The notes under the pieces were generated by a model. It was not told the DNA's origin, made no database searches, and was given only the letters and a program-made list of their open reading frames with translations. From positions 13,816,642 to 13,880,641 of the forward strand of contig OZ037770.1 of NCBI GenBank assembly GCA_964035545.1: a stretch of DNA of 64,000 nt, written 5' to 3'. Of this stretch, positions 10,868 through 57,093 are shown piece after piece. The position numbers were made by a program, and so were the translations under genes. The number at the start of each line of letters is the position of its first letter. The first letter of the stretch is position 1. Source of the stretch: Bugula neritina (Eukaryota > Animalia > Bryozoa).

Positions 10868-13800
10868 CTAATTAGTCGCCCATTCGTGCCACCTGCTGCG
10901 GCATGTCGTAGCAGTGTTCACCATGTACCAATGGTTACATCGACAAATGTCAAGGTCAAAAACTGTGCCGGCCGGACATATCCACCTTGCCAAGGCGGCA
11001 TGCTGACCTCCAAGGTTGTAGGTTCTGTAGGCATCAATACAGAAAGTGTCTGGTCTGATGTAGTAAGTGAAATCTACAGAAAAATGACGAAATTCTTTAG
11101 AGAACATAATCTCTTCTGCAATATTTCTAATCTAGAACACAAGTTTTTCTCAACCAGTTCACTACTCACATCACCGAGTTTTGCTAGAAATCTTCCTTTG
11201 AGAAAAAGCTACATGCTACTATCTACATAAAAAACTCACTTACACAAGTATACAGTCACCATCCCTGTAAGAAAACCCTTGATGGAAAGTGTTTTTTGTT
11301 AAATGGGGCTAAGGACTTATTCAGATGTGGCGCAGGAGCTTTCCCTAACATCACCAATGGCCTTTGCTAAGGTTTGAACTCATGATTTTGTGCTTATTAG
11401 ACTAGACCATGGCTGCTCCCTAAGCTATAACAAGCTACATAGCTCTGAACTAATTAAAAGGTGGAGGACAGATGATGAGAGATTATCTACAGCTACTCAC
11501 CATCTGAACTGATGCATGTCAACGAACTCAACATCACTGGGATGTTTTCAGCAATATCAGTTGGCTGCTGTACTGGCTGGATTCCAAAACAATTCCCAAA
11601 ACAGTTTCCATCTTCGTCAGTACTGGCGCCTTGGTTTTCTACAATGTAAGTAGACTTAAGTGAGGTTAGGTTTATACTACAGCCCTATTTCAAAACTACT
11701 TCATATTAGAACTTAAGCTACAGTGTCTCCCGCTAGTTGCTCACACCTTGAATCATTTATACTGACGTATTTTATTTTATTAACAGAAACATTTCAATAG
11801 ACCAAGTTCTTTCACTATCTTTTGAATTTTAGTTTAAGGCCTAGGTTGAGATTCTCGCTATAACAAAAACTTCTTTGCTACATTTTTCATCTATTATAAT
11901 ACAGGTGTTTTCCTAACTCCTCCATTATTGCGCCTGCTCTGTATATTCCAATTATTTTTTTAAATAAAAGTGTGATTTTTTGCTTAATTAGAAATTTGAG
12001 TTCAGAATAAATGAATTTCGGACAGAAACAGTTTCTCATGCTACAGTTGCTGCTAATGTCCCGATTATAACGCCAAAACAGTATTTTACACTTATTTATT
12101 CAGAATTTGTGTTTTAAATATAAAACATTCAGCAACTTACCATTTTCTAAGCCATTGCCCTCTGTTCTATCGAAACAGTTACCAACGCAGTTACCTTTGT
12201 TGTTTCCGTTACCTGTAAAATATAACCCAAAATCATAGCATATGACTCATCATGACACTCGTATGCACTGAATTAATCATTAGTATTCCGTTACGTCACG
12301 CTGAACGCTAGAACGCACTCAACATATGCACTCCTACAAGTACAGTGTGATTTATAGTTGTCAACATCGCTTACCGCTAGTGTTGACATTTGCATTTCCG
12401 TTTGCATTTCCATCTGTGTTGTGAAAACAGTTGCCTTCGCAATTGCCATTATTATTGCCATTACCTAAAAGGAAAGTGTTATGTTGTTAACAATAAAATA
12501 AAACAAGAGTGCAAAGTTCTATAGATGTATATAAATTATATATAAATCTAGTTTTTGGTAGTATTTTCAACTGACAAATTTCAAGCATTCAGTAAAAAGA
12601 AGTTGAGCTATAAAATACTCTTGATAAGAATAACTGGTTAAATTACAAAGAGCATTTAATTACAGTATTAGACATTAAAAATAAAGTTTAAAATGTAAAT
12701 TTTGTTCTACACAAAGTTAAAATTTAGTTTGATAAGATGTTTTAGACATACTTGAGCTGTTGGTGTTTTCATTGCCATTGCCATTTCCACTCTCGTTCCC
12801 CACACAGTTTCCTTTGCAGTTGCCATTGTTGTTTCCATTCTCTGTAAAGTAGCAAAATTTTTTCAAACTAATGAAATCATTATTCATTGCAGTAAGGCGT
12901 CAATACCACATTTCCTTATCAAAGTATATGATTGTAAAACTGTCATAATATGTCTAAATATACTAGCAAAGTCAACGTATTAAATCATTTAAAATGAACA
13001 TGTAAACAATTATATTTTATAAATGTATCAGAAAATGGAATAGCTACTTTTACTGTTTACCAGGGAAGATAATAAAGTTACTATAAAACATTTGTTGTTC
13101 AAGAACGTAAGTGTGCGCTACCTTCAAGTCTACCAACAATAATGTTATTATAATATAACATATAATAAAAAACACATCATATTTAGTGTCTTTCTATAAT
13201 TTCTTCTATTGCATAACATTATCTAATATTATATTATATATAGTATTAACAATATACTATATAAACAGCTTTCAAATTTTTACTACTAAAGTTAGATAGT
13301 GGCCATTTTGTACACTGATAGCCTAGATTAATACATCCTACAACATCTCTCTACTTACCATCTCCAGTGTTGACGTTCCCATTTCCATTACCACTTTTGT
13401 TGTCTGCACAATTTCCATCGCAATTGCCATTTAAGTTTCCATTGTCTAAATTAGAATTTGTGTTATTTTAGTACATTTCATGCGATTGTGTAGCGATGAG
13501 CATATTCACAATAATATTGCAGAATAAGTGTAGAGCAGTTGCACATTATAGTATTTTAGAAGCACTTGTAGAATGATTCTAGAATAGTTATGGAAATAAT
13601 TTAGATTATTTATATAGTGGCTTATAGACAGCTTTAGAATAACCTGAGTAGATTGTAGATTGTCTTACCTGAGCCATTGTTGAAGTTGCCATTGTAATTC
13701 CCGCTGCCTCCGCTGACATCAGTCTGTCTTTTTACGATATGCGCTGCCAGACAGTTTGACAGCATCACAGCCCTGTGTAAATGAGGTCATTATATTATAT

Positions 13801-14481
13801 CATAATATAATATTATATTATATTATAATAATACAATGCAATGTCTTGTGATATAGTTACTATAGTAGTATGAGTATTATTATTAGTATATTAGTGTATT
13901 ATAATAATAGTTATACTATCATTATAATATAGTGTGATGCAACACAATAGATAATATAGTATAATATATAATACTTCAACACAATAACAATAGATAACAG
14001 TATCAGTATAATAAAATATGCGATATACATAGTAAATTGTATTAACACAGAACACAATATCTACTATTTGAATTCTAGCATATAAATGTAATAACATATC
14101 ATAGTGTAATATAGTATTAGTATACTATAGTATAATGTAATATATATATGTAAATATGCCATATTGTATTTTCGTATCTTGAATTAAGCATTATCAGCTT
14201 ACTATATTCTGCTTTACATAATTTAATCTTGCATATCAAACATGGCTAATTGGTTAAGGGTTGAAGTTTTTAAAAACCGTTCACCAACCTATTAAATAAC
14301 ACCCGTTGACTTACACTCAGTTACTTACACTACAGTTACTTACACTATGGTTACTTACACTCAGTTACTTACACTACAGTTACTTACACTATGGTTACTT
14401 ACACTACAGTTACTTACACTACAGTTAATTACACTCAGATACTTACATTAAAATACTGCAGGTTACAATAGCAAGTCTCAT
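10868..14481 (-). CDS. Paralog A: secreted Gly/Asn/Cys-repeat protein with C-terminal CBM14-like chitin-binding domain, 8 exons, ~273 aa
   Basis: Exons 14481-14447, 13772-13669, 13445-13359, 12841-12752, 12464-12375, 12212-12141, 11638-11501, 11073-10868 total 822 nt, all GT-AG and in frame: MRLAIVTCSILMAVMLSNCLAAHIVKRQTDVSGGSGNYNGNFNNGS-DNGNLNGNCDGNCADNKSGNGNGNVNTGD-ENGNNNGNCKGNCVGNESGNGNGNENTNSS-SNGNNNGNCEGNCFHNTDGNANGNANVNTS-GNGNNKGNCVGNCFDRTEGNGLEN-ENQGASTDEDGNCFGNCFGIQPVQQPTDIAENIPVMLSSLTCISSD-DFTYYIRPDTFCIDAYRTYNLGGQHAALARWICPAGTVFDLDICRCNHWYMVNTATTCRSRWHEWATN*. Confidence 0.9.
11320..11420 (-). mobile_element. tRNA-derived SINE-like element, family 1 (last intron of paralog A)
   Basis: Reverse complement GGGAGCAGCCATGGTCTAG...GAGTTCAAACCTTAGCAAAGGCCATTGGTGATGTTAGGGAAAGC closely matches 2621-2720. 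Confidence 0.65.
14309..14446 (-). repeat. ~14-15-bp tandem repeat containing GTAAGT, abutting the intron-1 donor of paralog A
   Basis: Plus strand (ACTTACACTACAGTT)n, about 9 copies; the minus-strand unit carries GTAAGTA. Confidence 0.85.
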
Positions 14482-14530
14482 TTTGGAGTATTCCGAACAG
14501 TCAGCTTTCTGAGTGGCAAGATTGTAATAC

Positions 14531-14563
14531 AACTGAACTACTTCTATTCAGTCTCCATTTATA
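14531..14563 (-). promoter_or_regulatory. TATA box + Inr of paralog A
   Basis: Minus strand TATAAAT (14563-14557) with TCAGTT (14536-14531) ~30 nt downstream, ~50 nt before the ATG. Confidence 0.65.
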
Positions 14564-17500
14564 TTAATATTAAAGAATCATTAAATTAATTTGTGACGAT
14601 ATTAATTTTTTAACCCAAGTTCTTTCAATCATGTGCTATAATTTGGTAGGGTGGACCTACTACTCTTCCTTTATAATAAAGTATAATCTCTTTCATGGAA
14701 TAAATCATTTCAGGAAGGTCTTTGCATGGATCGTTGCACACGCAATGATTACTTGGAAAACATTTATAGCTTCTTTTTTACCACCAGCTTATATCTATTG
14801 GGATGAGGTAGTTTACACCCCAACTTATCTTGATTGATGAATGCGCAGTTTACAGGCTAATCATTGACTCAACGCTTCGCCTCGGATGTTCCATATAGGG
14901 TAGGTTGATACCGAAATAATGTAGTTATTCATCATCACAAACTATTTTGGCCTGCACGTCAACTTTGGTCTTAAGTTGTGTGATTTACAGCATTAACAGC
15001 GTAGACTCTGGCTTAATGAAATACATGTTATACATTGGTGATGGCAAAATAGTAGAAAGCTAGAAAATTGCCATAAACTACTACCAGATGGAGTTTGTTC
15101 CTCCATTAATTCTTTTGTACACATATTAATTTAGAAAAGTTAGGAATGTGGTGGGATACATGCATTAAACTAATTTTATTGTAAAATCAATTTATACATG
15201 AAAATATCCTTTCAAAGTTAAGCAGCAAAGAATTACAATGTTTAATACAAATAATTTTATTTTTTCATCAAGTTAGTACAGTACGTGTTTTATTATAATA
15301 CTAGATATGTATTGCAGGAGATGTTACTGGATGCTTTACTGTAGGCGGTATACCTCAACATATAAATTATATTCTTTCTGTAACAATAATTCAAAAATAT
15401 GTCCGGAGGAAAAAACTAGAATAAATTCAAATATATATTTATATTTGTTTAAAACGCTAGAACTATTATAAAATGCCTTATGTGGCTAATAGAACTTGCA
15501 AATTAATTTCCATTTTGGTGCGTCAGAGTGAATTGGAGGCCCTGATCAAAGCTACTAATAATGTATAAATACTGCTCAATCATAAAGTTGATACAAATTA
15601 TTGTAGGCTTTTCAATTACTCACATTGACTTCATTAGAAACACCCACATTATTAATTTCTGATGAATTTATTTATAGTCATTTACAGTTTATATTTAATT
15701 GCCCAGATTATTACACATTTTGTTCAAAGTTCATTAGCTATTTGTATGCAGTGATAGCCACTGATGGCTATAAAGTATATAAATAGCACTGTGTAATATA
15801 TGCATGACGCAATTAAATTTAGGCTCTTAATATGCTGGGTTGTCTAAATTATAGTTATTACAATTCAGCAACAGCCTATTTCCTCATGCAGAAGTAGTGC
15901 TTTGTGATAACTAGGAACACTTATTGACACTAAGCTACGTTGAACGAGATTTTAAAAATGATTTGTTACCTTAAAATTAGGAGGCTCTTTTGTTCAATAA
16001 TTAAAAATTGTGAAATTTTTAACAGCAATTTTAATGGTAAACTTCATGGTCACTTTTTTTAATGAAAAACGTAAACTTTAGTAATTACAACTACTTTAAG
16101 CACATCACACGCCCATTAGAGCTTTCAAAATGATCAATCAATTATCTTATGAGAATTAATGAGTTGAATTGAATGGTTATATCTGTTATATGATCTTTTC
16201 AACCAGGTTACTTATCAACTAGGCAAATACATGAAAACACTTGATATTGAAAACATGGATATTAAATGCAACTTCAAACCTGCTTGTTTTAAAATACTTT
16301 CAATAAACTTATTATAAAAAATATTATGTAAATAATAAAAACGCCATGTTTGCCAAAAGCAATTTTGGCTCTGTAATTATATACCTGGTTGAAACTTTTG
16401 CCAGAAAGCACAGGTACTCTCAAGTCTCAAAAACAGATGTGTGCTGCCAGCTTCTTAGAAGAGAAATAAAGTTAGGAGCATAAATCCTTCACCCAATGCA
16501 TTTGCTATACAATGGCACCAAAATTGTTGAGTTTTAGCAATCAGACACAATCTATTTCGACTTTAACATGATTTGTGTCTATTTGCTTAGAGTTTCTTTT
16601 TACAAAGAGATTTCTAAAAAATCTTAAATTAGCAGTTTGAATCACTATTAATTTGAAAAGTTATTAACAATTAATAAATAACACTAGCCAGCTACGCCCT
16701 GCTACTGGTAAAAGATTTCCTGGTTTTGTGCTAATTTGCTGCACAACTTATATAATCGACTTCCATAGAATTCAAACTTAAACCTGAGGCGTGTAGTGAA
16801 ACAGTTAATGATAATGACTGCTAATTACCATATCTCAGTGATTTTCAAGTAGCAATATAATGGAAAATTGAAAAACAGGTGCTGAGTGCAAGGAACTGTG
16901 AAATTTTAGCAAAAAATTAAGTTGTTGGACAATTTTTCAAAATACTTTTAAAATAAACATTTTTCAATTGTTCTGCACATAATAGTTTTATATTTCAATA
17001 ATGTTATAAGTACTAAGTACTAAGCACCAGGAGCCAGGGAAGCAAAATCAAGTATTTTTGAATAAGTAAAAATCAGCCACTTCACAATTTGGCAATGACA
17101 ATCAAACCATTTGTTTCCAGAATTATCTTATATATACATGACTCATGTGTGGATTCACTAAGAAACCCGAGTATCTTGGCATAGCCTGTGGTCAGATGTT
17201 TCTCTCGCACCAGCTACTCTGACATCACACTGCAGGCTATGATTCTCACTCAGGTTTAAAAAAAGTTACAAAGTCATAAAGAGTGCTTCACCCCCTTCCC
17301 CCTTTCCCCTCCGCCACTTGCATAGTCTATATACAGTTATGGTAGTCTAATTTAAAGCCTTTACAGTGAAAATTGATTAATAAGTTATAAAAAACTGTTT
17401 TTGTAGACCAAGTTCTGAATATTGATATTTTTGTAAAATATAATTGTAATAAAAAATGAAAAAAAAATCAAGTAGAGCTATCATGTCTAACTGTTCAGGA

Positions 17501-19243: not shown

Positions 19244-22200
19244 TCAAATAGCCCAAGAGAACCAGTGACTCTGACACGTGTCCAACACATCTATGAAGTA
19301 CCAGTGATTACAGCTACACAGGTCAAGGTCAAATGCTGTACCTGAAGGACAGCTGAACTTGCGAAGTCGTCTTTTGCCGCCTTTTCGGTTGTTGACCCTG
19401 TGCACTTCGAGACAGCTTGAGTGAGGCGTGACGTAGTATGTGAAATCTAAAAATAGATTAGAAAGTAACTTCAACACTCAATGCTTTTCCCACACTGCAT
19501 TGTTTTAGGGTTTCCTTTACTAATAGTAGTTGACTTAGAAAAAAAAATGAATGAAAACAATATTGTAAATTATTGTTGCAGGCAGCTTGCATTTTATGTT
19601 TTAATAGACTTTGCAACATATAACACATCATTATAGTAATACTATTTTGTATACTATTATTGCTTATAGTAATATAGCCCTATATTGCACTTAGTTCTAA
19701 AAGCAGAAGCAAGACAGATTTGAATGACTGCACCGCCAAGGGTGTTAAACTCCCACATTATTTAATCAAAACTAACAGCACACTATCACCTACATAGTAC
19801 ATATTATTACAAATATGTATTTTTCTAGAGAGATTTGTAGTAATTTCTAAATTTGTAGAATATATTGCAAATTATAGTTATTCACAGCACTATATATATT
19901 ATACTATTATATTGCCCTATACCATATTTAATTACACGACCTCTATATTATATATCATTTTATATATATTACTTGATATTATATTTTATTACATTCTTTT
20001 ATACTATCATAATTTATTATATTATATTATACTATGTTATATTGCATTATATTTTACTATACTATATGAAATTTTGTTATAATATAATCTACAATATTAT
20101 AATATATTTTAAATTATATTATATTACTCATACCTGTAGAACTGACACACTTTAGCCGTGAATCCAACACAGGATACCGAGGGTTATACCCGGGCTGGGT
20201 CTGTATAGGCTGAGTACCAAAACAGTTACCAAAACAGTTGGAACTTCCAGGTTGAAGGGAGGTTGAGTCGGCTGCAAACAAACAACTCGAGATTAGGACT
20301 GATGCATTATAAAATAATGTTTATCATAATTTCAAATATATGCCGTAGAGATATTAAGGTTTTATATGCAAGCAGATTGTAAGATGAAGTGGAGAGCTCC
20401 AAAAATACAACATTTTTAGTCTTCTAGTAAAATTAATCTTTTAAAAAGCCCTAAAAATAAAAATTATTTTTGCAAATTCAACAACCTGCATTAAATTTAT
20501 GTGAGTCATTGGAAAACATATACAGAACACTTATTTATGCTTACACTACCACACTTAGACTATACTTACACTACCACACTTACACCACACTTACACTATA
20601 CCAAATTTACACTATTTAGTATTTACACTAAACTCTACACACTCTACTTACACTACAATTATATTACACGTACACTACACCTACTCTATACTTACTCTAC
20701 ACTTGCTCTATACTTACTCTACACTTACACTACACTTACCATTTCCAAGTAGGTTTCCCATAATTCTGTGAAAGCAGTTTCCTCGACAATTTCCATTGTT
20801 ATTCCCCCGTCCTGCAAAATAATTACATCCTGAGGAGTTGCTTCATCGTGTTTGATCTTTAATAAAAATATTTAAAGGACTTTGTTTTATCAACAAAAAA
20901 ACTTATTTAAAAATTTCAATATTATTTGTGCATTATGTGATGTTAAAAGTATAACATACCTTCTAATTTGCTGTTTTCATTCCCATTAAAATTTCCAGCT
21001 ACATTGTGGAAACAATTCCCGACGCAATTGCCACTATTGTTACCATTTCCTGTAAGCAAGCAATAGTAACTCTGAAAGTTATATGAAATTTTGGAATCAT
21101 AATAATTTTAATCAATTGATTAATTCGACTCAGTATTATAATATTGTGAGTAATTAAAATTCTAAAATAATAATTGCTAACTAATAGACTTGTGAGATGT
21201 GGTCTAGACACAAATTAGCTATTGTTGAAACTCACCATCATTCTGATTAGCATTACCATTGTGGTTGCCACTTCTGTTTCCAACGCAATTGCCTTTGCAG
21301 TTGCCGTTTTTATTTCCATTTCCTATGAAATTAAAAAAGTTCTTTGCATGAAAACATGACTTCCAGTTTAAAATATTTTTTGCAATGTCAAAATATAAAT
21401 GTCTACTTATCACTTACGAAGTTATTAATAAATTTATTGTGATAATTGGCCAAGATATGCTCTTTTACATGCAAGTATGGGAAATTCTAGTTTTTATATA
21501 AGCAATACAAATCTTGTTAAAATTGCTATATATATGTATATATATAGTGGGTTAATTTGGAAAAAAACTTTATATAAAACTATACGTATTGTAAATATGC
21601 ACATAATATTATAATAAATATATTGTATAATATGTACACAGTATACATATGCACAATAAAATTAATTACAATTGCACTCAAATTTTACCGGCCATTGTTT
21701 ATTAGTTTATTGAAACAAAGAATAATTCTGAATATACTTTGCACCAAAAATAGCCTGTAACTAATCAGCAAATTCTGTATTACAAGTGGTGCCCTTACCG
21801 TTCCCGCTATTCCAGTTGCCATTGCCATTTCCCAAAAAGTTCTTAGCGCAGTTTCCAATACAGTTGCCATTCTGATTACCATTTACTGTAGGAATAAAAC
21901 AGAGAACCTGCTGCACATGTATATGGATAATATAGAGAACCTGTTGCACATATGTTTTGATAATATGAACTAGAAACTTCATGGCTGGTTAAAACTAACG
22001 AAATACATTTACTATGGTTATTTTCATTCTCAACATAACACAATTTCTAACAAAACATAAAACTTTCAGTTTTCCTTTTTTGAACGTGCAAATGTTCAAA
22101 AGTTGTGATTGAATAAATCTAGCATAAATAATTATAAGGAAAGACAGCAGATGATCTCTTGTTGGTAAAGAATTTGTTAGCTTCTATGATTTTTCATTTT

Positions 22201-23323
22201 CTATAAGTTAAGACTTTTGAAAAAAGCTTCTCGGTGGAATATATTTTGAAAAAAAGAAATGGTCTTTTAGCAAAGAAAGCATAAAACTAACAAAAAGTGC
22301 AAAAGCTGGTATATGCTCTTTCTTTTCAGTAATTGACTATATGCACACAATTGTTCAATATACAGTAGAAATAGAATAGTTGAGGTAAATTACAACTTTT
22401 CGAGGCATCAAATTATTGAAACTTTGAAAATGAGAAAAACCGGCCAATATAGTGCTCAGCACTTTATTATATTTTCTATAAAAAAGAGTATTTTTGTCAC
22501 AGTTTCAGGTTTTACTAAGCCTAAAAAATCTGATTTTCAGCATGTAATAAAGCTACATGTGAAAGACAATCAGGTTCAAAAAGAACGTAATTAACCTTAG
22601 ATATATAATATTATCATGTATAATATATAATATAATATTATCATATATTATATATATTATATATAATATATAATACACTCCAAACACGCTTTAACCATTA
22701 TTACTATTTGGAGTTCTTTTCTTTAGTAAATATATTTTGATCAATAATATGAAAGAATTAAAAATTAAAAGTTTATAAAAATGTAAATAAAATATTGATA
22801 GATCACCATTTGTATGTATTGTGCATAATATGCATGTAAAGTGTAAATATATAATACTAAACTAAAAAAAATATGCATGCAAAAAACATATTACTTACCA
22901 CTGCCATTGTTCTGGTTGCCATTGAAGTTTCCTCTACTCTCAATTTTCTGCAGCAAAAGGTTTCCTTCAGTTGTGACAGCAAACATCCTGGATAACACAA
23001 AACATAGGCAGTGGATAATAGGCAATGTCATCATATATATAATAAATAATTATTAATTGCAATAGACAACAATCTTTTGACACAATATAGTTGATGAAGA
23101 AATTGAAGCAAAGCAACTCAATTTTTATATTACTGGTTTTGATCAGTTTTATTTACCAACTCCAACCCTTTGCCTCACTATACTATGCATTTATTCTATT
23201 TTGCATCTAAAAACACAGCATTTAAAATGCTTATATTTTAAAAAAATTATAAACAAAATAGACTATAACTTACATATACAAGATGAAGGGTAGAGTTAGT
23301 TGGACTCCCTTGCGGTATGCCAT
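19244..23323 (-). CDS. Paralog B: secreted Gly/Asn/Cys-repeat CBM14-like protein, 8 exons, ~271 aa
   Basis: Exons 23323-23274, 22987-22899, 21885-21799, 21322-21236, 21049-20960, 20811-20740, 20271-20134, 19446-19244 total 816 nt: MAYRKGVQLTLPFILYMMFAVTTEGNLLLQKIESRGNFNGNQNNGS-VNGNQNGNCIGNCAKNFLGNGNGNWNSGN-GNGNKNGNCKGNCVGNRSGNHNGNANQND-GNGNNSGNCVGNCFHNVAGNFNGNENSKLE-GRGNNNGNCRGNCFHRIMGNLLGN-ADSTSLQPGSSNCFGNCFGTQPIQTQPGYNPRYPVLDSRLKCVSST-DFTYYVTPHSSCLEVHRVNNRKGGKRRLRKFSCPSGTAFDLDLCSCNHWYFIDVLDTCQSHWFSWAI*. Confidence 0.9.
20540..20739 (-). repeat. Degenerate ~11-bp repeat (GTAAGTGTAGT-like) starting at the exon-6 donor of paralog B
   Basis: Minus strand reads ...GGAAATG|gtaagtgtagtgtaagtgtagagtaagtatagag... 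Confidence 0.75.
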
Positions 23324-24505: not shown

Positions 24506-25825
24506 CAATTATTTATTGCAATTTAAGCTATGAACTACATTAATAATTATGGGTGAAAAACGGTTTCAAACAAATATAAAACTTTGCACATAATACAAGT
24601 ATATTACAGTTCGAGTTGCGAAGCATAGATTTAGTTACGTACCATACTGGAAAACTATTGTTCGATACCGTTAGTCGGGCATTGGACCCTGACTCCATTG
24701 AATTGACTCATAATCCCCGATGTTTGTTAATACTTCTTGTGCTGCCACATTCACTGTTCTGTACCATTAGTTAAACACAACAGCTTTGCATTAGTCAGCA
24801 GAAATTTTTCATCTTGAAAAATTTCTGGTTTCTTAGATTGGCACATTTTGATTCCATGATAAAAGTAAGTAACAGGTTTTATAACAGACCTGGCACAGCC
24901 CCATAGAACAGTGTTATGGCTATATTTTACTTTAAACTGCAGTAGTACATTGTATTTGTATTCTACTTCAGTTTATAATTCTCTAACATAGGAAAAAATA
25001 TATTTCATGCAAAGTACAGAAGTTGAGGTGAAAATCAAAAAAATATCTTTGTTTTTTTTGTTTTATTAAATTAACAAATATAATTTTGCATCTAGTTTAT
25101 TTGCATTTATACTTTTATGATATCATTAGAAAGCTATAGACTTACTAATTCCATCTAATAGAGTCTATTTTAGCATGCAGAAATACATGCTACAATGTTA
25201 CAATGCTACAATGTTCAAAAAGGCAGTTGAGCAATATGTCAAAACATGCATAACGAGGCACTTGCTCTTCATAATATCTTATTGGAGCTTTTGACTTTTG
25301 ATGCCCATATGATCTTTTTATTAGGTACCTGTAGTGTGTGTCAAATTAAATCATGCCAAGAGATGCTAAGTGACAGGGGGCACAGGTACTAGCCTGTGAT
25401 AGCCTCAATTTTCATCACACATAGCACCTCTGATGCTTTGCCAGAAGTAAACCGCCTGAAATTTACTTTGCTGGATACCATAACTTTTTCACCAAAAATT
25501 CTTAAATCTTATGTAAATTTAAAAGACTGCTAACCAGACACACCTCAGCTCAAAGGCAAGCATGGTCTGCCTGTAAAAGGCAAATGTGTTACATCACTAT
25601 GAGTTGACAAACAGGGATATGTGAAATAAACCGCATGTGTAATCCAGTGCCTGATTGCAGTCACTAGATTGAGAAGTCACTGTTACTCCGAGACAACCTT
25701 TAATCTTTGATTAATGTTTCATAAGAGATTAATTGGTGTTGATAATCAATAATTATTAGTTATAGATTGAGATCAGAATAACATGATTGTAAATTGCAGA
25801 CTTTATGAAGCTACAGACATGAATG

Positions 25826-25975
25826 ATTGTGGTTCAGCGGTTAGAGCGAAGGACTTGTGTAAGCTTATAGGTCATGGGTTCGAATCCCTGAATGGCCATT
25901 GGTTTTGTTGTAGCTAATCTCTTGCTACCTTGAAAGCCCTCAAACCATGTTACCATCATGGTAAGAGTTATGCAC
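25826..25975 (+). mobile_element. tRNA-derived SINE-like element, family 2
   Basis: A box TGGTTCAGCGGTTAGAGC and B box GGTTCGAATCCC. The tail GCTACCTTGAAAGCCCTCAAACCATGTTACCAT...GTAAGAGTTATGCAC is shared with 32618-32763. Confidence 0.65.
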
Positions 25976-27621: not shown

Positions 27622-30166
27622 CTATGCTCTATTGTTAGTGAACTCCGAATGACTACTGGTACACCCTGCAACTATGTTAGTTAGGTACCAGTGGTTACAC
27701 AGGCAAATGTCAAGGTCCATTACTGTGCCTTCTGGGCATTTAAATCTTTCCAGCCTTTTCTCAGGCAAACCTGTATTAACCTCACGGTAGATTTCAAGGC
27801 AGAATGTTTCTGGTACCACGAAGAATGTATTTCCTGCAACAAAGGCCCAGATGCAGACGTACCTATTTAAATTACTGGAGTTATCTTCTTTCCTATTTTT
27901 TCATTTATTAGCAAAAGTGAGTACAATATATGTCTTTTTTTGGAATACAGATTAGAATTTGTAGTGTTTGTAAATAGCAAAAGACTTTAAGTGTTTTAAG
28001 TGTTTCCTTAAACTAATAATTTCACAAAACTCAATTTGAATAAGATCTCACAAAATATTTTGCTACTACTACTTTAAAAGTGATAAAAAAGATTTTGCCA
28101 AAATTTCTGCAATTGAAATACTGCAGTTTAAACTTGCTTAAAATAAAATTAAATATTTTTTATTCGTTAAAAATTGAAGCATATTACAATGATGCGTTGC
28201 TATCCCTTAGTTTTAGTTGCAAATTGCATGACTACCTTGACCAATCATCTGGCAGAAGAGAGGGCTGGACAGGATGTTGTACTTAGAGTCATAGTCACTA
28301 GTGGTACCAGTTGGCTGTGGGTCAAAACAGTTTCCAACGCAATTTCCTTTATTGTTGCCTTCAAGTGAAATGTGCATATTACTAAAACCTTTGAAATCAT
28401 CTTATAACTTTTGACAAAATTAGGAAATATTCAGATTGCATGTAACAGCACAGATACTTGCCACATGATTTAATACAAAGCATGCCTTGGGATGAATTTA
28501 TGTTTTTTATATATTAAATAGAGTTGTCTTTCCTTGTCATAGGTGTTCGACATATGAAAGTAGTAATTACTGTAACAATCATGCTTTTACCTTGACCTTG
28601 TGCAGTTTCTCTGATGAACTTTTCAATGACCTTTACTCTGATGTCATTTCCTTGACTATTTCCTGCAGATCGATAAAAACAGTTCCCTCGGCAAATGCCG
28701 TTTCGGTTGCCATGTCCTAAGAATATGACAAAGTCCTTTATTCACTTTTATAAACTTTCGATAACAAAAATATAAAACTTAGTTTAAAATTGATGCATAT
28801 TTCTTTCACCTCCATTGTCTCTGCATGCATATATAATTTCTGTTAAAACTACCACTCATTATTAATCTTCAGCCACCAACTGCTGCAAACCAATTACTTG
28901 CCAGACAATTATTTGTTAGAAGTCTAGAAACTGAGTGCTTTAGTCTTAAACTGTCAAACTAGAAAGATAAATTGTGACTTTTCTGTTTTTCCAAATAAGT
29001 TGAGACATACAGTATGTAAGGTTAACTACCTAACTAACCATGATAAGGAGTAGATTATAAGAGCGTATAATCAACTTATGTAAATCCATGAAAAAAACGA
29101 GGTTATTTTGTATATAAAAGCACACAGATAAAAGAAATTGATTTACAAAGATAAGAATTAATAAGAGAGTGGCTAATTAAATTTATGTACTTCAACCTAA
29201 ATTTAGTCAAAAGCATAGTATATGAAAAAAAATTAGCTACCATAGCTATTATATGCAGTTCTTATTTTGACCTAAATACAAATTTACAAAGTTTAATAAT
29301 TAAAGTCTTTGCATTTTTATCATAAAAAAGTAAGTGAGGTGACAGGAGAACTAGCAGTTACCTCCTGAAAAGACATTGTTATTGCCATTATTATTCCCTG
29401 CTACGTTGTAGAAACAGTTACCTTCGCAGTTTCCATTATGATTGCCGTTATCTATAATATAGAAAATGTTGGTGAGTAATTGAAATGTTGTCAATCAGTT
29501 TATGTAGGTACCCAGTACCCACCACATACAAGAACACTTTGATTTTAAATTTAGAAAAATGTTTCCTAGGGAATAAAAGTTATTATAATAGTTTAAAATT
29601 AAATAAAAAATTCTTGCTCACTTCTATTCAAATTTGTCCCCAATGCACTGTCATAAGCAGTGTTCTAAAAAGAAAACAATGCAGTATTTATCTAAAACAT
29701 AATGATTTAAAGTTTAGACATAAATAAAAAGTTAGTTATTAGCTGCAAAAAAGCTTTGCCATGCAGTTATATAATTGTGCGGTTTTAACTTTATCTCTAC
29801 ATACAGTTAAAAATATATTTAACTTTGTGGCTCCCAGTTCATGGGTTAAGTAATAAATGGAAAGCAAAATAATTAGTAGAATGCAACTAACAGTAGTTTC
29901 AGCTATATGAAAGAACTGGTTGATAGTTCTTAGAAAACCAACTATTAAGGTATTACGGAAGAATAACTCCTAGAAAATAGATCTATGATTAGCAGAATAT
30001 CAAATGATTCAACTTACAGTCACTGTTTTGGTTCCAATTTCCATTAACATTTCCATTAACATTTCCAATACAATTGCCAAAGCAGTTGCCATTCCCTTTA
30101 CCATTATCTAGCAAATGTAGGACATTATTCATCATTATCTGTTCCATAGTTGCAACCATGTACACA

Positions 30167-30246
<80 letters not shown>

Positions 30247-31124
30247 CACACGCACTCTTATGTGTATTATACTGGTAGAAATGATATATACCTAATTAAC
30301 TTTCGTAATTTTCATAGTTTGTTATATATGTTTCGAATATGATGTTAACAAATATCATGTTAGATGATAACAGTTGAACCTGTCAATTAAAACACTGAGC
30401 AAGAGCACTGACAACTCAAAAAAAACTCTGAAAATCATTTCCAGACAGAATGTCAAGATAGATGATAAATTGAAGGAAATTAATCATTTCACCCACACAT
30501 GAAGTTATCTGTAGCCTGAAATCTGGCATTGTCTAAGCAGTACTTACGGGTGGTCAGGTCTGTCCCTCCACCCACTGCTGCAATACTATTGGCTAGACCA
30601 TTATGTTGCTGGGCTGCACAGTTTCCTATACACAAGCCGCTAGTGTTACCAAACAGCGTCACACTCTGAAAGGACTTATGAAACAACCTATTCCGGCAAG
30701 AGAAGTAACATGAGACAAAATAATTTATACAATTGAAAATTAGTGAGTATATAAATTGAACACAGCTGCATTTTACATACATACAATATATATTACATAC
30801 ATGACATATTGCATATAATGCATATAATATATGTTGCATATAATACATTTATTACATATATTACAATAATTACATAAAAATGTATAATACATATAACGTT
30901 TCTCGCATAATATTATAATGCATATTCTACGTCTAACACAAATGTATATTGCATATAATATAGTATATGTTACGTGTTATATATTGATATAATAAATAAA
31001 ATATATGCTGCATGAAACACCACTGGCTATAAACAATTGACCATAATTAAAATCCAAAAAGTTTTAAATTCAGTTTTGTGTTTACTTACATGCACAACAC
31101 AACCAATGATTGTATTCCATACAT
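27622..31124 (-). CDS. Paralog C: secreted Gly/Asn/Cys-repeat CBM14-like protein, 7 exons, ~271 aa
   Basis: Exons 31124-31090, 30687-30548, 30107-30018, 29451-29362, 28716-28591, 28358-28236, 27833-27622 total 816 nt: MYGIQSLVVLCMLFHKSFQSVTLFGNTSGLCIGNCAAQQHNGLANSIAAVGGGTDLTT-HNGKGNGNCFGNCIGNVNGNVNGNWNQNSD-YNGNHNGNCEGNCFYNVAGNNNGNNNVFSG-GHGNRNGICRGNCFYRSAGNSQGNDIRVKVIEKFIRETAQGQ-GNNKGNCVGNCFDPQPTGTTSDYDSKYNILSSPLFCQMIGQ-GNTFFVVPETFCLEIYREVNTGLPEKRLERFKCPEGTVMDLDICLCNHWYLTNIVAGCTSSHSEFTNNRA*. Confidence 0.87.
30162..30255. repeat. (CACG)n microsatellite in paralog C intron 2
   Basis: About 20 perfect CACG units; explains the RACV/THAR ORFs. Confidence 0.95.
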
Positions 31125-32617: not shown

Positions 32618-32763
32618 GCAGTTACGGTTTAATGGTTAAAGAGATGAATTCGTGTAGTTGGTTTGAACACGGTGCAGGGCCATTAATCTTGTGTAAAAAA
32701 TCCTTCGCTACTCTGAAAACTCCCAAACCATGCTACCATATTATAGTAAGAATAAAGATGCAC
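32618..32763 (+). mobile_element. tRNA-derived SINE-like element, family 2 (degenerate)
   Basis: GGTTTAATGGTTAAAG...GGTTTGAACAC...GGCCATT...GCTACTCTGAAAACTCCCAAACCATGCTACCAT is homologous to 25826-25975. Confidence 0.55.
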
Positions 32764-33399
32764 AGTGTAATGCGTGTGCTATAGTTCAGTAAAATCCTAT
32801 GTTAATTTGCAGTCCATTACTTGTATATAATAGCTTTTTATAATAGCTTTTTATAATTTCTTTTGCTTATTTATGGTCAGAATTTACTCTTTATGTCAAT
32901 TTGTGTTGCTAGCTAGTTTGCCTTCCGTATGCAAAATGCTGTATTACAAGAAACTGTGATTATGTTATATATATATAGTATATAATATATAATATGTGTA
33001 TTATATTATATTATATTATATATATTATATTATATTATATATTATATTCATGAGTTGTACGTAGATCTATTTCGTAATTCCTTTCATCTCTAGTTTGAGT
33101 TTAATGAGTTTTTTTCTTTTTAGACAGCCTTTCACTTTCCTTCACTATTAGGTGGTGTGATTTCCCAGTAGCCCCTACAAGTAATACACTGGTTTGCAAA
33201 TTGGAAGATTGATCTCCACACCTGGTACAGGCAGTCATTTTACGGACACTTTCCACCATGTTGCCACTGAGTGTATCACAGGTTTTCCCTGGACAAACAT
33301 GGAAGAACTATTAATTCTGCAGGACTTATTCTTTCTCTCCAACCATTCCAAATGGTAAGAAAATAAATTTGGTAACAAAACTAAGTTCATTGTTCACTG

Positions 33400-33790
33400 G
33401 GACCAAAAACCCAGACGTGTTGCTATGCTTAGCACTAATATATTTGGTTTAAAATATATTTTCTGTCCATGTTCTGGTGAGAGGTTTTTTCTTTTCTATT
33501 GCTTTAAAATGTTCAATGAAAAAATGCATGATTTGAAATTTTATCTCAAAATAAAAAAAATCAGGGTGTTGGATGACAAAACAAATTTATTGTTAATACT
33601 TAATAGTGCAGAAAACCCAGTGGTTTTCTGATACTTCACACAAAAATAGTTGGTTTAAAAGATCATCTTTTCTTCCCTGTAGGATATGCTAGGGTAAAAG
33701 CTCTCTTTTTATTTTTTATTAATTGCTCTAAAATGTTAAATATAAGAATGCATGATTTTAAATTTTGTCCTAAAATTAATTAAAAATTTT
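33400..33790. repeat. Old degenerate ~200-bp direct duplication
   Basis: AAAACCCAG...TTGGTTTAAAA...ATTGCT(T/C)TAAAATGTT...ATGCATGATTT.AAATTTT occurs twice (~33405-33560 and ~33612-33785). Confidence 0.6.
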
Positions 33791-36175
33791 ACAGCATTTA
33801 CATGGTAGCCAACCATTTGCTTTGTTTTTTCTGTGAAGGAACTCTCAACTCTCAGCTCATTGTTCTCAGTATTGCTTGTATCGAGGATAAGCATCACCCT
33901 TGGCTAGTTAAAAGGCTTCTTCTGGAAGTGAAACTATTAATTTTACCCATGTTCTTTGTAGACCTTGTACCATATATAGCAGTCATTATTGTTAATTAAA
34001 CGGGTTTTTCTTCTAGCTCATGCATATTGTTGTTTATGGATCTTACAATAGCTATATAAACTAAGTCAGGTTAAAAACACAAAATTAAATTACAAAATTT
34101 CATTGCCAATCAAATTTACTTGAATTTACTAGTTTTTGTTAATAATTTGCTGTGTGAACTATAATCAAGTTCATCATCAGCACCTATATTCTAGGCTATT
34201 TATAGCTATCCTACTTTATAGCTATATTGATATACATACTATTGTTAAGCACTACAGCTTCTATATCATGGCTCTATTATACACATAATACATAACTATA
34301 TGCATAAACAACAATATGCTACTACAACATGAACATAACATAAAAATAGTTTTATATTTTTTTTGGATTTATCAATGATGTAAAATTATAGATGCTGGTT
34401 ATTATACCCCTTGTACATGCAGTGATACTGAAGATTGTTGCTGTGCCTATAAAAGATAACTGAGTACTTTTTACATTGTTATGGTAAAACTATTTTTATT
34501 GTAAAACTATTACTTTATAAGGTGTTTATTTTGTACTTATGCAAATATTGTAATGAACCAGTATCTTGATACAGCACAAGTGAAAAGTCGTTTCTTTTTA
34601 GTTTTCTGCATCACACTAATAGGAAATGTTATAATTTATATGTATGTCATATATGTACAATATATATTGTATACATAATATTTTTTATACCGTAACAGAA
34701 TGCTAAATAAAAGTACTGCATTTGCACTTATATATCACGTTCACGCTCTGAACCAAAAATCGTCATTAATTTGGAATTTGCTGTAAAATTTGAAATTTTT
34801 TTTTGTAAAAGTCACCTACTTTACGTGTAAGCAACAACTATAAGGACATCTTTTCAAAGTTTAAAATCTTTTTGAAGATTCTAAAGTAATTATTTGATAA
34901 TGTATGGCCAGCGTCGCAGTACAGGAAATAGTAAATCTCAAATATTTCATATAACAATATCCACTTCTAAGGAATTGATATATGTAGGTTGTACAAATTA
35001 ACAATTACATACTAAAATAAACCCCGATTAATTTTTTTTAGCAAGCTTGTACTTATAACTTCTGTATTGTAATTTTGTTTTCATATTCAAAATATACAAG
35101 TAAAACTTTATTTATAGCGCTTAAGTAAAAACTAGATAAAACATCCTAATTTGCTTCATGATTTAACTATGTAGGTTTTTACTGATCCCATCTGCACCGA
35201 ATGTATTACAAATAAATTAGAAAAGAAGCATTTATTTATAACCAGAACAAATAGTAACAGCTGTTTTATAGATTCTTTTATTATAAACTTGATATTGTTT
35301 GACTAAGGTGCCATTGGTAACCTAACACTATATTGTATAGACAGAATTGTCAAATTTGAGTATACATACAGAGAGTTTCTCAGTTAATTATAAAACTTTT
35401 TGAGATAGGTAGTACTTATAGAGTTAAGCTAGTAACATGTAAATATTGGATGAAGGAAAATCAAATTAAGTAGAAGTTTTCATTAAAAACTGTGCTATAG
35501 TTTCCGTAAGAATAATCATTTAAGTCTGCCGAACTAAAAGATAGGAAGCTAAGAAAAGTGCCTATGGAAGACACCATGTGAAAGATAACATACCAAGAAG
35601 ATAGAAAAGGGAGCTGATTGTATCGATAATCATTTGCATCACCATAAATGTTGATGCTCTGCCATTTCCTAGTCTGTCATCACACATAATATGACAACAT
35701 ATATCATCGTATAAGATTGCCTTGCCAACCAAATCAAAATGGAGTATATACCTATGCCAGTAACGTTGAGTTAATGATATTATCACATTTGTCGTATTAA
35801 TCTGTATTAAATTCTTTTGTTACTAAAATTATGCCGGATTTACATCCTGAACGATTACATCATGCGTGACAAATCATTTGATTAGAAAGGAAATACCAGA
35901 ATATAGCCTGGGTATACTCTGAAGAAAGTTGGGGGTGGCATATCTAAATCACAGTCAGTGTTTGCTCATAAAAATTGAAAGAAATTGATTATAAGATTTT
36001 TTGAAGGAGATGTGATTAACTCTAAAATTTTCTTTTTAAAAAAAGTTAGCAGATTTGAATAGTATAAAGGAAACAAACCGCCTGAGCCCATCCAATGTCG
36101 CTACTAAAACTTAGGCTATAGCTTAGAAGCAGCCTGTAGAGTCATGATGCATAATAACAAAGTTGTATAGCTCCA

Positions 36176-36217
36176 TATATATATAATTAGAACAGATCTT
36201 TAAATGCTTTCACATTT
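36176..36217 (+). promoter_or_regulatory. TATA box + Inr-like element of paralog D
   Basis: TATATATATAA at 36176-36186 and TTCACATTT ~30 nt downstream; ATG at 36242. Confidence 0.5.
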
Positions 36218-36241
36218 GAATATTTTTTTGATAGCCTAAGC

Positions 36242-39200
36242 ATGGCACTTCTATCATTATCAGACCTAGTCTATCTATTTCTTACGTAAGTTTATAACGT
36301 ATTTTTAAAATTTTTATGAATCTATTGATGCATCTGCAATTAGTTTTACAAGTTGATTGCACACAAATTGATTGCACATTTATTTGGTTACATATGTCAT
36401 AATATATTTATCTATGCTAACACGTTCGTTCATTTTTGTGTATATAGTCAACTTGCAAAGTACGCCACTTGATTTTGTAACTATTTGATTATAATAAACA
36501 CAATTTTAACCTCACATATTTCTTATTGAGAAATATGCATATAATTTGATATTTGTCTATTGTAAGGCTTTAAAAATTATTTGCATTTTTTGGTAATCAA
36601 ATCCTTGGTTTTAAGCAAATACATTATTTGTTACTTTTTTCAATTTTTTTAAAATCCTAACTTTTCTTGAAAGTTAGTTTGCTATTTTATATAGCAGATT
36701 TATTTTTTGAGCTCACATAAAAATTATTTATTATAAACAAAAGGAAACCAAATTTGTTATGTGTCTGCAGCTCAAATAGCAACTTAGATTGAGTTGAAAA
36801 TAATTAAAATATTATATATTATAATGCAATTAACTTACAAGAATTAAAGACATTACAACCAGTATGAGTAACAGTTTAGTAGCATTTATTTTTAAAATTC
36901 TTTAGCTGCATATTCTACGTATTGCAATATAAACAAATGTGAAAAAATTTTAAAAGACCTACAAAAGCATAGAAAGATACGAAAAAGTGTAATAAAGCGA
37001 GTTATTTGAACAAAATAAATATAAAATAAATGTTGTAAAACTTTAGAAACACATTGTTGGAAAACTGTGCACTTCTTAACTGCCATGCACTAATTATATT
37101 GAGTATCACTTTTAATGCTACTCAAACATTTGTACCAATTCTCTCACACTCTAGCACTAACCTGACATGTTTTACTTTTGCAGTCTTAGTTGCATACTGG
37201 CGCAGGTTGCAGGTCAAACTGTATCATTTAAAAACATTCAGAAGGACTATCTACAAAGGCAAGAGCAACTACAGAAACTCCGAACACCAAAATATGGTTA
37301 CATACGAACTTCAGGTTAGTGATGAGAAGTTGTGACTGAAAGGAGTGATTGATCACCACCTGTTTTTCACAATATGCTAGAGAAATTTTTTTAATTTATC
37401 TAACCTCATTTTATTCGACATCCCAAAATAAACGTATAGCCCTTGAAATATAATTCTGGCTTTGACTTATTGGACATAACTGCTTAATAATCTTACAATT
37501 GAATCAATCAAAAGTATGATACAATTTCCTTGACTTCCATGAGGCCAAAACGATTAAATTTGAACTATAAGTTTTATCCAGTAATTACCCATTTTGCATG
37601 TCTAGTAAACTTCAGCCAAAATCCATCTTGCATCTTGAAACTATTAATAGTAAACAACAAAAGTTATTAAAACTATAGCTTTTATAGATGCAAACAGGAA
37701 AAGTATTTTGTTCTTTAAATAACGTAAACCATATCTGTTTGTAAATTCCAAACAACTGAATAAAATAAAAATCTACAAGACTGGCTTGACTTTATTATTT
37801 TGTGACTCATTTAAAGCTTCACAAAAAACATGAGACAAAACATTTCCTTTTCCATTTTACAACTGACACCTTTTTAAAACATAAATTTCTGTCAAATGTT
37901 TCAGCAGCTAATCAGTGATGTACACGTAGCATTATAAGTCTAGTATATTTTGGCAATTGAGATCAAATTATGAGTATGATAAATAGCTATATTTATGAAC
38001 AAGTTACAATAATTTGCATAAATTATATGATGCTTAAATATTTTCATATTTTCATCACCTCCTATAGTGTGAGAGCTCCAAAAATACTATATCATAAACA
38101 CATAAATCAAATTCATTTTTTTCTAGGTAGTGTAATATTTGGCAATGGCAATGCAAATGGAAACTGTTTTGGTGATTGCTATGGCAACGAAAATGGAAAC
38201 ACAAATGGCAACCAAAACAAAGGAAAAGGTAAGCTTGATTATCACCTAAAGAAAAATAAAGTAATGATATCAAAAGACCTTCAAAAAAAAAAAGTTTTCG
38301 TAAAAAACATAGTTTAACCTTTTAATTATCTGATGCAGCTAAACTACTATTATCATCATTTAAATAGGAAATGGAAATCATAACGGGAATTGCAATGGCA
38401 ACTGTATTGGAAACACGAACGGCAACTTTAATGGGAACTACAACCAAAATAGCAACAGTATGTATAATTTATATTTAAATGGCATTAGGGTAAATAGTAA
38501 GTATTATATAGAAAAGTAAGTAAAAATGAAGTGTTGTATAGAAAATTACATAAAAAGAAAGTTTAAGCTGTGTTCATATCTATTATATACAATATATACT
38601 AGATAAGGAATGAGTAAATCGAACTACTTGTAGTATAAAAACATATTATTTGTGTATAAAAGTAACTCAGCCACACTACTATATTACAAATATGCAGTAT
38701 ACTCATAAACTTAATGCAACTTATTAGTAGATACCTAACGAATGCAATAAATGCAAAAATAATTATTGCTGCATATTGTTTGTATCAAGCATTGCATGCA
38801 CAATGCACTTTATTTTGTATATATAAAACAGCATATAGGTTGTTTAATAATTTTTGTATTATTTAAACATGCTTTTCAGACAATGGGAATCATAATGGAA
38901 ACTGCTTTGGTAACTGCTATCATAATCGAATGGGAAATGATAATGGAAATGGAAATATTGGAACAAGTGGTGAGTTGACAGCTATTTGATAGCGATTGAA
39001 ATTGTTTAAATAATCTATTTGATTTCCTAAAAAGTTTGCAGGGTTTAAATCGCTGTAGATGTTGAGTCCAGATAAGTACCAGATAAATGACATTTTATTG
39101 CTTCATGTACCATGCTCCATATTAAATTATCCGTTCGTTACCAATTACTCTAGATTTGAAAAAATATGCATACCATGCTATAGGCCATATTCAAATATAT

Positions 39201-40234
39201 AGAAAATTCGTTGATTCAGTATATTTTTATGTAATATGTAATTATCATTTAATATCTTTAAAAGATACCATTATAGCAAAAATATCTCCTAATAATTGCA
39301 GTTCTAAAAAGTCCTCCTTTTTTTTAGGTAATGGGAACCACATTGGTAACTGTAGAGGAAACTGCTTTCATTACAAGTATGGAAACAACAATGGCAACAA
39401 TAACCAAGGTACGTGAGGGGATAATAAAACATTACAGACACTAAGAATATTTGTAACAAGACATAACAAAGTTATGCAAACGAGAAGTAAATGTGTTGCT
39501 TTTACAGATGGGAGTTATCATCTACCTGTTTATGATAAGAACAGCTTAGCAAGAAGGACTTCCTGTATTGGGAATTGTTTCCCCAGACATCAGCCAAGAA
39601 AGTTATACCATGTAGCTCTTAGTCGAACTGAGATTGTACAGAGTCAACTGACCTGTGAAAGTGAAGATGGTACGACTGTTATTGGCTATAGATTATTGAT
39701 TATTGATCAGTCTAATATGTTATCTGGAATATGTTCATATTTTAGGTTGCTTAGAGATTGTATAACACAATATATATACCATTGTATATTATAATGCAAA
39801 ATAATGCAATATGTAGTATAGTGGAATGTAACAAAATGAAAATATGACACGATTATAATACAATATAAGGCAAATTTACACAATAAGATATGATACATTG
39901 TAATATATAACATGATATAAAATCCCATTTTTAAACAATAATATATTGTAATATAGTATAATGCCATATAAAATACATTCAAAACTCAAATTTATAACGC
40001 TATACTATAATATTAATTTTTGTTGCAGGGTACACTTATTATGTTAGACCAGGATCCTACTGTCTGGAGATTTATAGACAAAACCAAAAGTCTAAGCATA
40101 GTCCCCTATCAAAGACACAATGCTCTAGTGGAGAAGCGTTTGACCTTGACATATGCACCTGCAACCACTGGTGGTTTGTCAACGTTTACAAGACCTGTAG
40201 CAACATCCTCGATAACCAGAAGTCAAAGAATTAG
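36242..40234 (+). CDS. Paralog D: secreted Gly/Asn/Cys-repeat CBM14-like protein, 8 exons, ~301 aa
   Basis: Exons 36242-36285, 37184-37314, 38127-38228, 38368-38457, 38880-38969, 39328-39408, 39508-39669, 40029-40234 total 906 nt: MALLSLSDLVYLFLTLSCILAQVAGQTVSFKNIQKDYLQRQEQLQKLRTPKYGYIRTS-GSVIFGNGNANGNCFGDCYGNENGNTNGNQNKGK-GNGNHNGNCNGNCIGNTNGNFNGNYNQNSN-NNGNHNGNCFGNCYHNRMGNDNGNGNIGTS-GNGNHIGNCRGNCFHYKYGNNNGNNNQ-DGSYHLPVYDKNSLARRTSCIGNCFPRHQPRKLYHVALSRTEIVQSQLTCESED-GYTYYVRPGSYCLEIYRQNQKSKHSPLSKTQCSSGEAFDLDICTCNHWWFVNVYKTCSNILDNQKSKN*. AATAAA at 40301. Confidence 0.88.

Positions 40235-41955: not shown

Positions 41956-57093
<15,138 letters not shown>

Follow-up and report, generated by a model that had tools for sequence, protein, structure and literature searches.

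What family of proteins is encoded by the four neighboring genes found in a 64,000-nucleotide stretch of Bugula neritina DNA (the window, contig OZ037770.1), and what might it do in a bryozoan? A preliminary description, made from the sequence alone, had taken them for intact, spliced members of an undescribed secreted family in which Gly/Asn/Cys repeats are joined to a chitin-binding, CBM14-like domain. The genes are indeed intact at the places and on the strands described, with GT-AG boundaries at all introns and no internal stops, and the exon models bear out the shared intron phases (2,1,1,1...) in A-D. The features are as follows.

10868..14481, minus strand: gene A, 8 exons (14481-14447, 13772-13669, 13445-13359, 12841-12752, 12464-12375, 12212-12141, 11638-11501, 11073-10868), 273 aa
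12141..13445, minus strand: exons 3-6 of gene A, symmetric (phase 1), each encoding one repeat
11501..11638, minus strand: gene A cap/linker exon, with the fifth CxGNC, QP and the first Cys of the C-terminal domain
10868..11073, minus strand: gene A last exon, CBM14-fold domain
19244..23323, minus strand: gene B, 8 exons (23323-23274, 22987-22899, 21885-21799, 21322-21236, 21049-20960, 20811-20740, 20271-20134, 19446-19244), predicted splicing, 271 aa
19244..19446, minus strand: gene B last exon, CBM14-fold domain with a best Pfam score of 17.2 bits against a cut-off of 22.1
27622..31124, minus strand: gene C, 7 exons (31124-31090, 30687-30548, 30107-30018, 29451-29362, 28716-28591, 28358-28236, 27833-27622), predicted splicing, 271 aa
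27622..27833, minus strand: gene C last exon, CBM14-fold domain
36242..40234, plus strand: gene D, 8 exons (36242-36285, 37184-37314, 38127-38228, 38368-38457, 38880-38969, 39328-39408, 39508-39669, 40029-40234), predicted splicing, 301 aa
40029..40234, plus strand: gene D last exon, CBM14-fold domain

For gene A, splicing is visible in RNA: the joints of 7/7 introns occur in contigs assembled from three putative RNA runs, one from each of three studies. One putative RNA run has no contigs with gene A exons and another run of the same study has them; such contigs can show the presence of a transcript, not its absence. The boundaries of gene C exon 6 come from homology only, with a weak donor and an alternative in-frame acceptor at 28388. 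At the DNA level, the pattern Cx-G-[N/D]-C occurs 20 times within the window, five times per gene and never outside the genes, against an expectation of 0.40 and a maximum of 2 in shuffled sequences (n = 100). An Asn-rich stretch at 58400-58630 was rejected as a fifth gene, being a simple repeat without Cys, and four further GNCxGNC DNA matches (C1, C4, C5), isolated and adjoining stops, were rejected as chance. The upstream regions of the family genes contain no 8-mer common to all promoters. Synonymous sites are saturated and pN is 0.32-0.46, in keeping with the earlier view that the genes are old and maintained; an artefact or pseudogene reading was rejected on the strength of the intact models, the splicing of gene A and the synonymous saturation.

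The proteins share one order of parts: a signal peptide, four exon-encoded Gly/Asn/Cys repeats of ∼29-30 aa, a cap with the fifth CxGNC and a C-terminal domain with six Cys. The regular repeat had been described in 4-5 copies, but the count is four, the fifth CxGNC sitting in the linker and the first repeat of gene C being degenerate and placed inside exon 2. The C-terminal domain does have six Cys, although the first is encoded in the penultimate exon and not the last, and the motif DLD(I/L)CxCNHW, said to be invariant, is so in these four genes, whereas homologues carry CDRW, CNRW or CNNW. Secretion, also proposed earlier, is predicted from the N-terminal hydrophobic stretch with no transmembrane segment. 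The mature gene A protein is acidic (pI ∼4.5), with five N-glycosylation sequons and a KR-Q site after the signal peptide, whereas B (pI ∼8.8), D (∼8.9) and E, a fifth family gene, are cationic; the repeats in B-E are not acidic.

Gene E was overlooked in the preliminary description. It lies 680 kb away and is conserved, and it encodes the repeat without the CBM14 domain; the repeat therefore works as an independent module. In all, the genome holds five old, conserved family genes (A-E) and no recent duplicates. Separate multi-CBM14 genes are also present in the B. neritina genome. Among the matches listed, there was no full-length relative that has been characterized, and the literature search brought up no description of the family or of its repeat. 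Full-length homologues have no Pfam family, and full-length and domain-region searches with the database homologues P0015 and P0027 returned only themselves among the matches listed; a word-based homologue search with just the last exons, subject to a length window, gave no match. The only named relative among those matches is a Watersipora ortholog; the others, fragments from marine metagenomes, share the exon plan. The family appears, as suggested earlier, to be restricted to this lineage. The ortholog (Watersipora subatra XP_067951511.1) corresponds to D, with 53% identity, the same 8 exons and phases and, like D, a position adjoining an ISWI gene. This uncharacterized protein was automatically named after Dictyostelium DDB_G0282499, a name that most likely reflects Asn-rich composition only. 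By sequence, the nearest outgroups are peritrophin-like proteins of insects, which share a C-N-H motif with the family.

How far the C-terminal domain can be called CBM14-like depends on the level examined. Structure and profile matches point to the CBM14/peritrophin-A fold, a distorted β-sandwich, but the PF01607 gathering cut-off is missed (best 17.2 against 22.1 bits, with a weak match in 6/15 members). The model (pLDDT 80) has CBM14/peritrophin-A domains as 6/10 of its top structural matches, the leading VIA matches being 8IN3 (Z 4.6), 4Z4A (3.7), 6BN0 (3.6), 4ZCE (3.2) and 6SO0 (3.1), low values for a small domain, and in the Atlas it matches mostly CBM14 clusters (TM 0.48-0.55). An hhalign comparison with peritrophin CBM14 gave 96%, which is partly circular because the set compared was drawn from the same search; the domain tree had no starred branch. 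With the CBM14 proteins EHEP (8IN3), Avr4 (4Z4A/6BN0), Der p 23, CHIT1 (6SO0) and tachycitin, the domain shares a predicted fold of 3+2 β-strands, C1-X15-C2 and C4-X12-C5 spacing and the motif C-P-x-G-x-x-F-D. Unlike them, it has an extra Cys two before C5, forming CxC, and C5-X11-C6, while the canonical Cys3 is replaced by T/V/E/Q; the family spacers (14-16, 15-20, 10, 1, 11) thus depart from C-X15-C-X5-C-X9-C-X12-C-X5-9-C, in which the bonds are C1-C3, C2-C6 and C4-C5 (PMC10619976). Where CHIT1 has Trp465 and Avr4 has Tyr103 (and Trp100 at C5-1), the family has His/Arg/Asn at C5+2 and a variable non-aromatic residue at C5-1, and its invariant Trp comes one residue further on (C5+3), followed by W/Y/F/L at C5+4. 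EHEP has the CBM14 fold yet does not bind chitin (PMC10619976), and the same is true of Der p 23. We regard the C-terminus as a candidate CBM14 variant with rewired disulfides, and its chitin binding as putative only, given the subthreshold Pfam score, the missing Cys3, the added CxC and the lack of the usual binding aromatic.

The repeat region had been likened to the Gly/Asn low-complexity tracts of mollusc nacrein and pearlin, a likeness that does not hold. Autocorrelation of its N and G residues shows peaks at spacings of 4 and 30 and is negative at 3, CxGNC is fixed at five in 6/6 full proteins, and in 12/12 late repeats against 1/12 early ones an F/Y comes after the second Cys. Fixed in number and specialized by position, the repeat resembles a folded solenoid more than a low-complexity tract. 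Nacrein/N66 and pearlin/N14/N16 of pearl-oyster shell are likewise secreted and Gly/Asn-rich, and pearlin has conserved Cys (PMC4066178, PMC7677314), but this is analogy only, with no sequence match to either among the matches listed in homologue searches. The family lacks the α-carbonic anhydrase domain split by Gly-X-Asn of nacrein/N66; its 271-301-aa proteins have none of the features of pearlin/N14/N16 (13-16 kDa, four acidic regions, one pure NG run, Gly/Tyr-rich); and periods of 4 and 30 instead of 3 or 2, a Cys pair inside each repeat and a CBM14-fold C-terminus set it apart from both. Searches of Pfam, PHROGs, PDB sequences and ESM features gave no match to the repeat. An Atlas model of the Watersipora region, itself weak (pLDDT 0.52), matches β-helix clusters (TM 0.58, 0.55), and AlphaFold gave no clear fold match (best Z 2.8, LRR solenoids) and pLDDT 42, in part because every single-repeat row of the alignment was stacked onto one repeat. 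The short-period Asn/Gly repeat and Atlas matches (TM 0.55-0.58) recall parallel β-helix/β-solenoid proteins (PF13229, pectinesterase, phage tail-fibre-like), although sequence and profile matches and conserved acidic catalytic residues are absent and the models are of low confidence. Insect antifreeze solenoids, which are Cys-stapled, belong to the same comparison. The repeat is a candidate new solenoid domain, possibly a coiled β-solenoid.

We give even chances to the reading that these are secreted extracellular-matrix proteins of the bryozoan body wall (cuticle/ectocyst) or of the organic matrix of the calcified cystid. It is favored by the signal peptide, the absence of transmembrane segments and gene A transcripts in three studies; by the CBM14-fold C-terminus beside a fixed-count, period-4/30 repeat with β-helix matches; and by the biology, since B. 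neritina begins to form its chitinous, lightly calcified shell 4 h post settlement (PMC4192642) and skeletal matrices of lophotrochozoans repeatedly combine CBM14 with repetitive domains (PMC13425148, PMC7272335). Against it stand the altered Cys3 and C5+2 positions together with the non-binding EHEP and Der p 23, the low Z scores and weak repeat models, and the non-acidic repeats of B-E, unlike typical mineral-binding proteins. In such a matrix, the C-terminal domain would anchor the protein on chitin or another glycan, and four repeats plus cap would fold into a short disulfide-stapled β-solenoid with internal Asn ladders, each exon contributing roughly two coils. A regular surface for other matrix components or mineral would be built from the F/Y-H residues in repeats 3-4 together with variable residues that point outward, acidic in A but basic in B and D. 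Gene E would provide such a solenoid minus the anchor.

An adhesive or cement role (larval attachment, rhizoid or basal wall), with Cys-cross-linked or stacked solenoid fibrils and the CBM14 domain tying glue to cuticle, seems unlikely. It would suit proteins that are secreted, rich in Cys and opposite in charge between paralogues (pI 4.5 and 8.8-8.9), and the uneven occurrence of gene A contigs between runs hints at stage- or tissue-limited expression, although contigs speak for presence and not absence. The proteins have no Tyr/DOPA-, Ser- or Lys-rich tracts, their strongly conserved repeat number is unusual for glues, and the literature search brought no supporting paper. We give an equally small chance to a gut or mucus protein, whether a peritrophin-like lining, a faecal-pellet coat or an EHEP-like binder of dietary polyphenols: the best structural match is Aplysia gut EHEP, a binder of polyphenols but not of chitin, and the C-N-H motif is shared with peritrophin-like outgroups, but each protein has a single CBM14 and not a series of them joined by Thr/Pro mucin linkers, and the separate multi-CBM14 genes are better suited. 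Surface defense or recognition, as a tachycitin-like antimicrobial or a lectin directed at fouling microbes or the symbiont, is rather improbable; tachycitin and Avr4 use the CBM14 fold, the aromatic-His ladder of repeats 3-4 could make the solenoid a glycan-binding surface and B, D and E are cationic, yet five old genes without recent duplicates lack the rapid expansion typical of immune families. Very improbable, in our view, is some other extracellular coat (operculum, tentacle sheath, or envelope of the egg or brood chamber) or an Asn/Gly spacer that is disordered and forms no solenoid; it would fit the low prediction confidence for the repeat, but position-specific conservation across saturated synonymous distances speaks against it.

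What is new here, on the matrix-protein reading, is a candidate building block of cuticle or skeleton in which a regular Asn/Gly/Cys repeat is joined to a modified CBM14-type domain. Secreted orphans combining CBM14 and repeats are common in invertebrates and in the B. neritina genome, which tempers this view. Cheilostomes evolved their calcified skeleton independently (PMC7317743), and the searched literature held no description of cheilostome matrix proteins or of a bryozoan skeletal proteome; the family offers five concrete, conserved candidates for such proteins. A bolder version, to which we assign a low probability and in which mineral control would be argued by analogy only, is a new disulfide-stapled β-solenoid of cheilostome origin, one exon per double coil, anchored on chitin through a rewired CBM14 and templating or regulating CaCO3 deposition. 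If true, this would give the skeleton that cheilostomes evolved independently its first known molecular component, one convergent with nacrein and pearlin of molluscs in its Gly/Asn surface.

A six-frame scan of the window from this cheilostome bryozoan (assembly tzBugNeri2.1, 216,009,554 bases; PMC11480708) confined the repeat and C-terminal motif to four clusters at 10.9-40.2 kb, and the Cx-G-[N/D]-C codon pattern occurs there 20 times, five per gene, against 0.40 expected. The predicted proteins of genes A, B, C (minus strand) and D (plus strand) are 273, 271, 271 and 301 aa long, encoded with GT-AG introns of phases 2,1,1,1... and zero internal stops, and each repeat corresponds to a single symmetric phase-1 exon, 72-126 bases long. 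By a hydropathy heuristic, as distinct from SignalP, all four carry an N-terminal hydrophobic stretch and none a membrane helix. The preliminary description had called these four intact spliced genes; the models uphold intactness for A-D, and splicing is seen in RNA for A. The RNA-seq check that it proposed, run on gene A, joined all seven introns in contigs from three putative RNA runs of three studies, with a single contig spanning 8/8 exons. These contigs differ from the window by ∼5%, and their source is therefore a different strain or a cryptic form. A fourth putative RNA run, whose study also supplied one of the positive runs, gave no exon contigs of gene A, at most a hint of regulated expression. 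The paralogues share 40-51% identity, with synonymous sites saturated (pS 0.74-0.90) while pN is 0.33-0.42; the genes are thus old and constrained, in agreement with the earlier view of them as old and maintained.

Within an intron of gene A, an interspersed repeat of high copy number sits at 11245-11402, matched by hundreds of contigs whose summed depth is very high, and RNA contigs at 10400-11044 may represent the 3' end of a Brix-domain gene overlapping that of gene A. An exon of this RPF2-like ribosome biogenesis gene (6264-6548, plus) forms the left flank of the cluster. An ISWI/SMARCA5-type chromatin remodeller gene with HAND and SLIDE matches occupies ∼43000-57000 (plus), its introns crowded with tandem repeats, including long minisatellite arrays (46519-47600 and 49798-52920) that are a source of spurious ORFs. 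A GTGC microsatellite lies in a gene C intron (30165-30255), and a tRNA-like sequence at ∼25820-25900 (minus), with the look of A and B boxes and no ARAGORN call, is probably a tRNA-derived SINE.

Pfam CBM_14 matches the C-terminal domain weakly, at 14-17 bits, under the cut-off of 22.1. From 15 sequences AlphaFold built a model of fair confidence (pLDDT 80, one model out of five); among its 10 best structural matches, six belong to CBM14 domains, with EHEP first (Z 4.6) and Avr4 next; ESM Atlas matches are mostly CBM14 clusters. The C-terminal profile aligned with peritrophin domains at 96% and also picks up other CBM14 genes of the Bugula neritina genome. Because of these structural matches, the profile alignment and the recovery of other CBM14 genes, we judge the domain to be CBM14-derived, as predicted from model and sequence. 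The designation "CBM14-like" holds for the predicted fold and fails at the Pfam cut-off and the canonical Cys pattern. The latter is C-X15-C-X5-C-X9-C-X12-C-X5-9-C, with bonds C1-C3, C2-C6 and C4-C5 (PMC10619976), whereas the family domain lacks Cys3, has an extra Cys two residues before C5 and a C5-C6 spacing of 11. Where CHIT1 has Trp465 and Avr4 Tyr103 (PMC4844120, PMC6128652), the family has His, Arg or Asn, followed directly by an invariant Trp. Since CBM14s differ in their binding residues, and neither EHEP nor Der p 23 binds chitin (PMC10619976), putative chitin binding by the C-terminal domain is plausible only. A similar Cys3-less CxC variant of CBM14 also occurs elsewhere in the genome, in arrays whose exons are nearly identical, a recent large expansion.

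Cys3-less CxC CBM14 arrays in the genome assembly (G000)
C2, 15.59-15.62 Mb: exon array
C2, 25.10-25.20 Mb: exon array
C2, 27.39-27.45 Mb: exon array
C4, 10.42 Mb: exon array

The repeat has zero matches in Pfam, PHROGs or the PDB. CxG[N/D]C motifs number exactly five in 6/6 full proteins, mostly spaced 28-31 residues apart, and the autocorrelation of Asn and Gly peaks at 4 (0.44 and 0.46) and 30. After the second Cys, repeats 3-4 have F/Y in 12/12 cases and then His in 9/12, against 1/12 and 0/12 in repeats 1-2, all counts being non-independent as the sequences are related. The fixed motif count, the 4/30 periodicity and the position-specific F/Y-His rule out a loose low-complexity tract. For the Watersipora repeat region, the ESM Atlas model (pLDDT 0.52) matches beta-helix clusters with a TM of 0.58 over 129 residues and a PF13229 cluster with a TM of 0.55. 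AlphaFold (pLDDT 42) gave three repeats one and the same small strand pattern, with only weak matches to LRR solenoids. We reasonably infer, short of a result, that the repeats would form a disulfide-stapled beta-solenoid with two ∼14-16-residue coils per exon.

Last exons were searched against 1.84 billion representatives, which yielded nine single-exon fragments and just two relatives of full length (a 268-aa JGI transcript and XP_067951511.1 of Watersipora subatra); the remaining matches checked were multi-CBM14 proteins, the named ones all arthropod. With these queries the architecture was found in no named non-bryozoan protein, and the family is described nowhere in the literature searched, in which coverage of subscription journals was thin; the claim that no known family combines a CxGNC repeat with CBM14 stands to that extent. 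Secreted proteins that pair CBM14 with a repetitive domain are well known as a kind, and the Bugula neritina genome has many such orphans; the repeat domain and the whole architecture appear undescribed. The Watersipora gene has eight exons and phases identical to those of D, and an ISWI gene adjoins both, in opposite orientation in Watersipora. One of its introns (Watersipora locus L022, ∼21335-21454) contains a decayed second copy of the cap exon. The single-exon fragments are of marine metagenome origin and keep the family exon plan. Two bear the sample code BRYA16-1, which by itself suggests samples of a North Pacific plastic study where bryozoans made up 30-90% of eukaryotic rRNA reads (PMC5069773). 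In a C-like homologue on a marine metagenome contig (L049:700-857), a stop codon stands where the fifth Cys is otherwise conserved, reflecting a pseudogene or an assembly error. In the domain tree, D, C and others weakly join foreign sequences and not one another, with no starred branch, a grouping consistent with duplications that predate these species.

Strong matches of the C-terminal profile in the Bugula neritina genome were A-D only, and the repeat profile found a fifth gene, E, ∼680 kb away on the same contig.

Gene E, the repeat-profile match
G000:C6:13,153,211-13,160,767 (8768-1212 of L032, the piece of C6 around it), minus: repeat gene

Gene E is intact and encodes 239 aa comprising a signal peptide, repeats plus cap and a basic tail, with the CBM14-like domain missing, and its introns interrupt the repeats. 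Orthologous E-type exons recur in two metagenome contigs of another species (L051 and L054), so both subtypes, with and without the CBM14 domain, are conserved.

The likeness of the Gly/Asn repeats to pearlin (PMC7677314) and to nacrein, in which a Gly-X-Asn domain inhibits the precipitation of CaCO3 (PMC4066178), survives in composition only, the defining features of both having been looked for and not found. The repeat region is acidic in A only and basic in B, D and E, a distribution that speaks against simple binding of calcium. Roles in adhesion, the gut or defence are less probable than one in the body wall. Chitin-binding and repetitive domains recur together in lophotrochozoan skeletal matrices (PMC13425148, PMC7272335), and in Bugula neritina a lightly calcified chitinous shell starts to form ∼4 h post-settlement (PMC4192642). 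For the body wall, which we consider the most likely destination, the epidermis would secrete these proteins, the CBM14-fold domain would retain them there, and the repeats would form a rigid surface of regular pattern, turned towards mineral or other components of the matrix.
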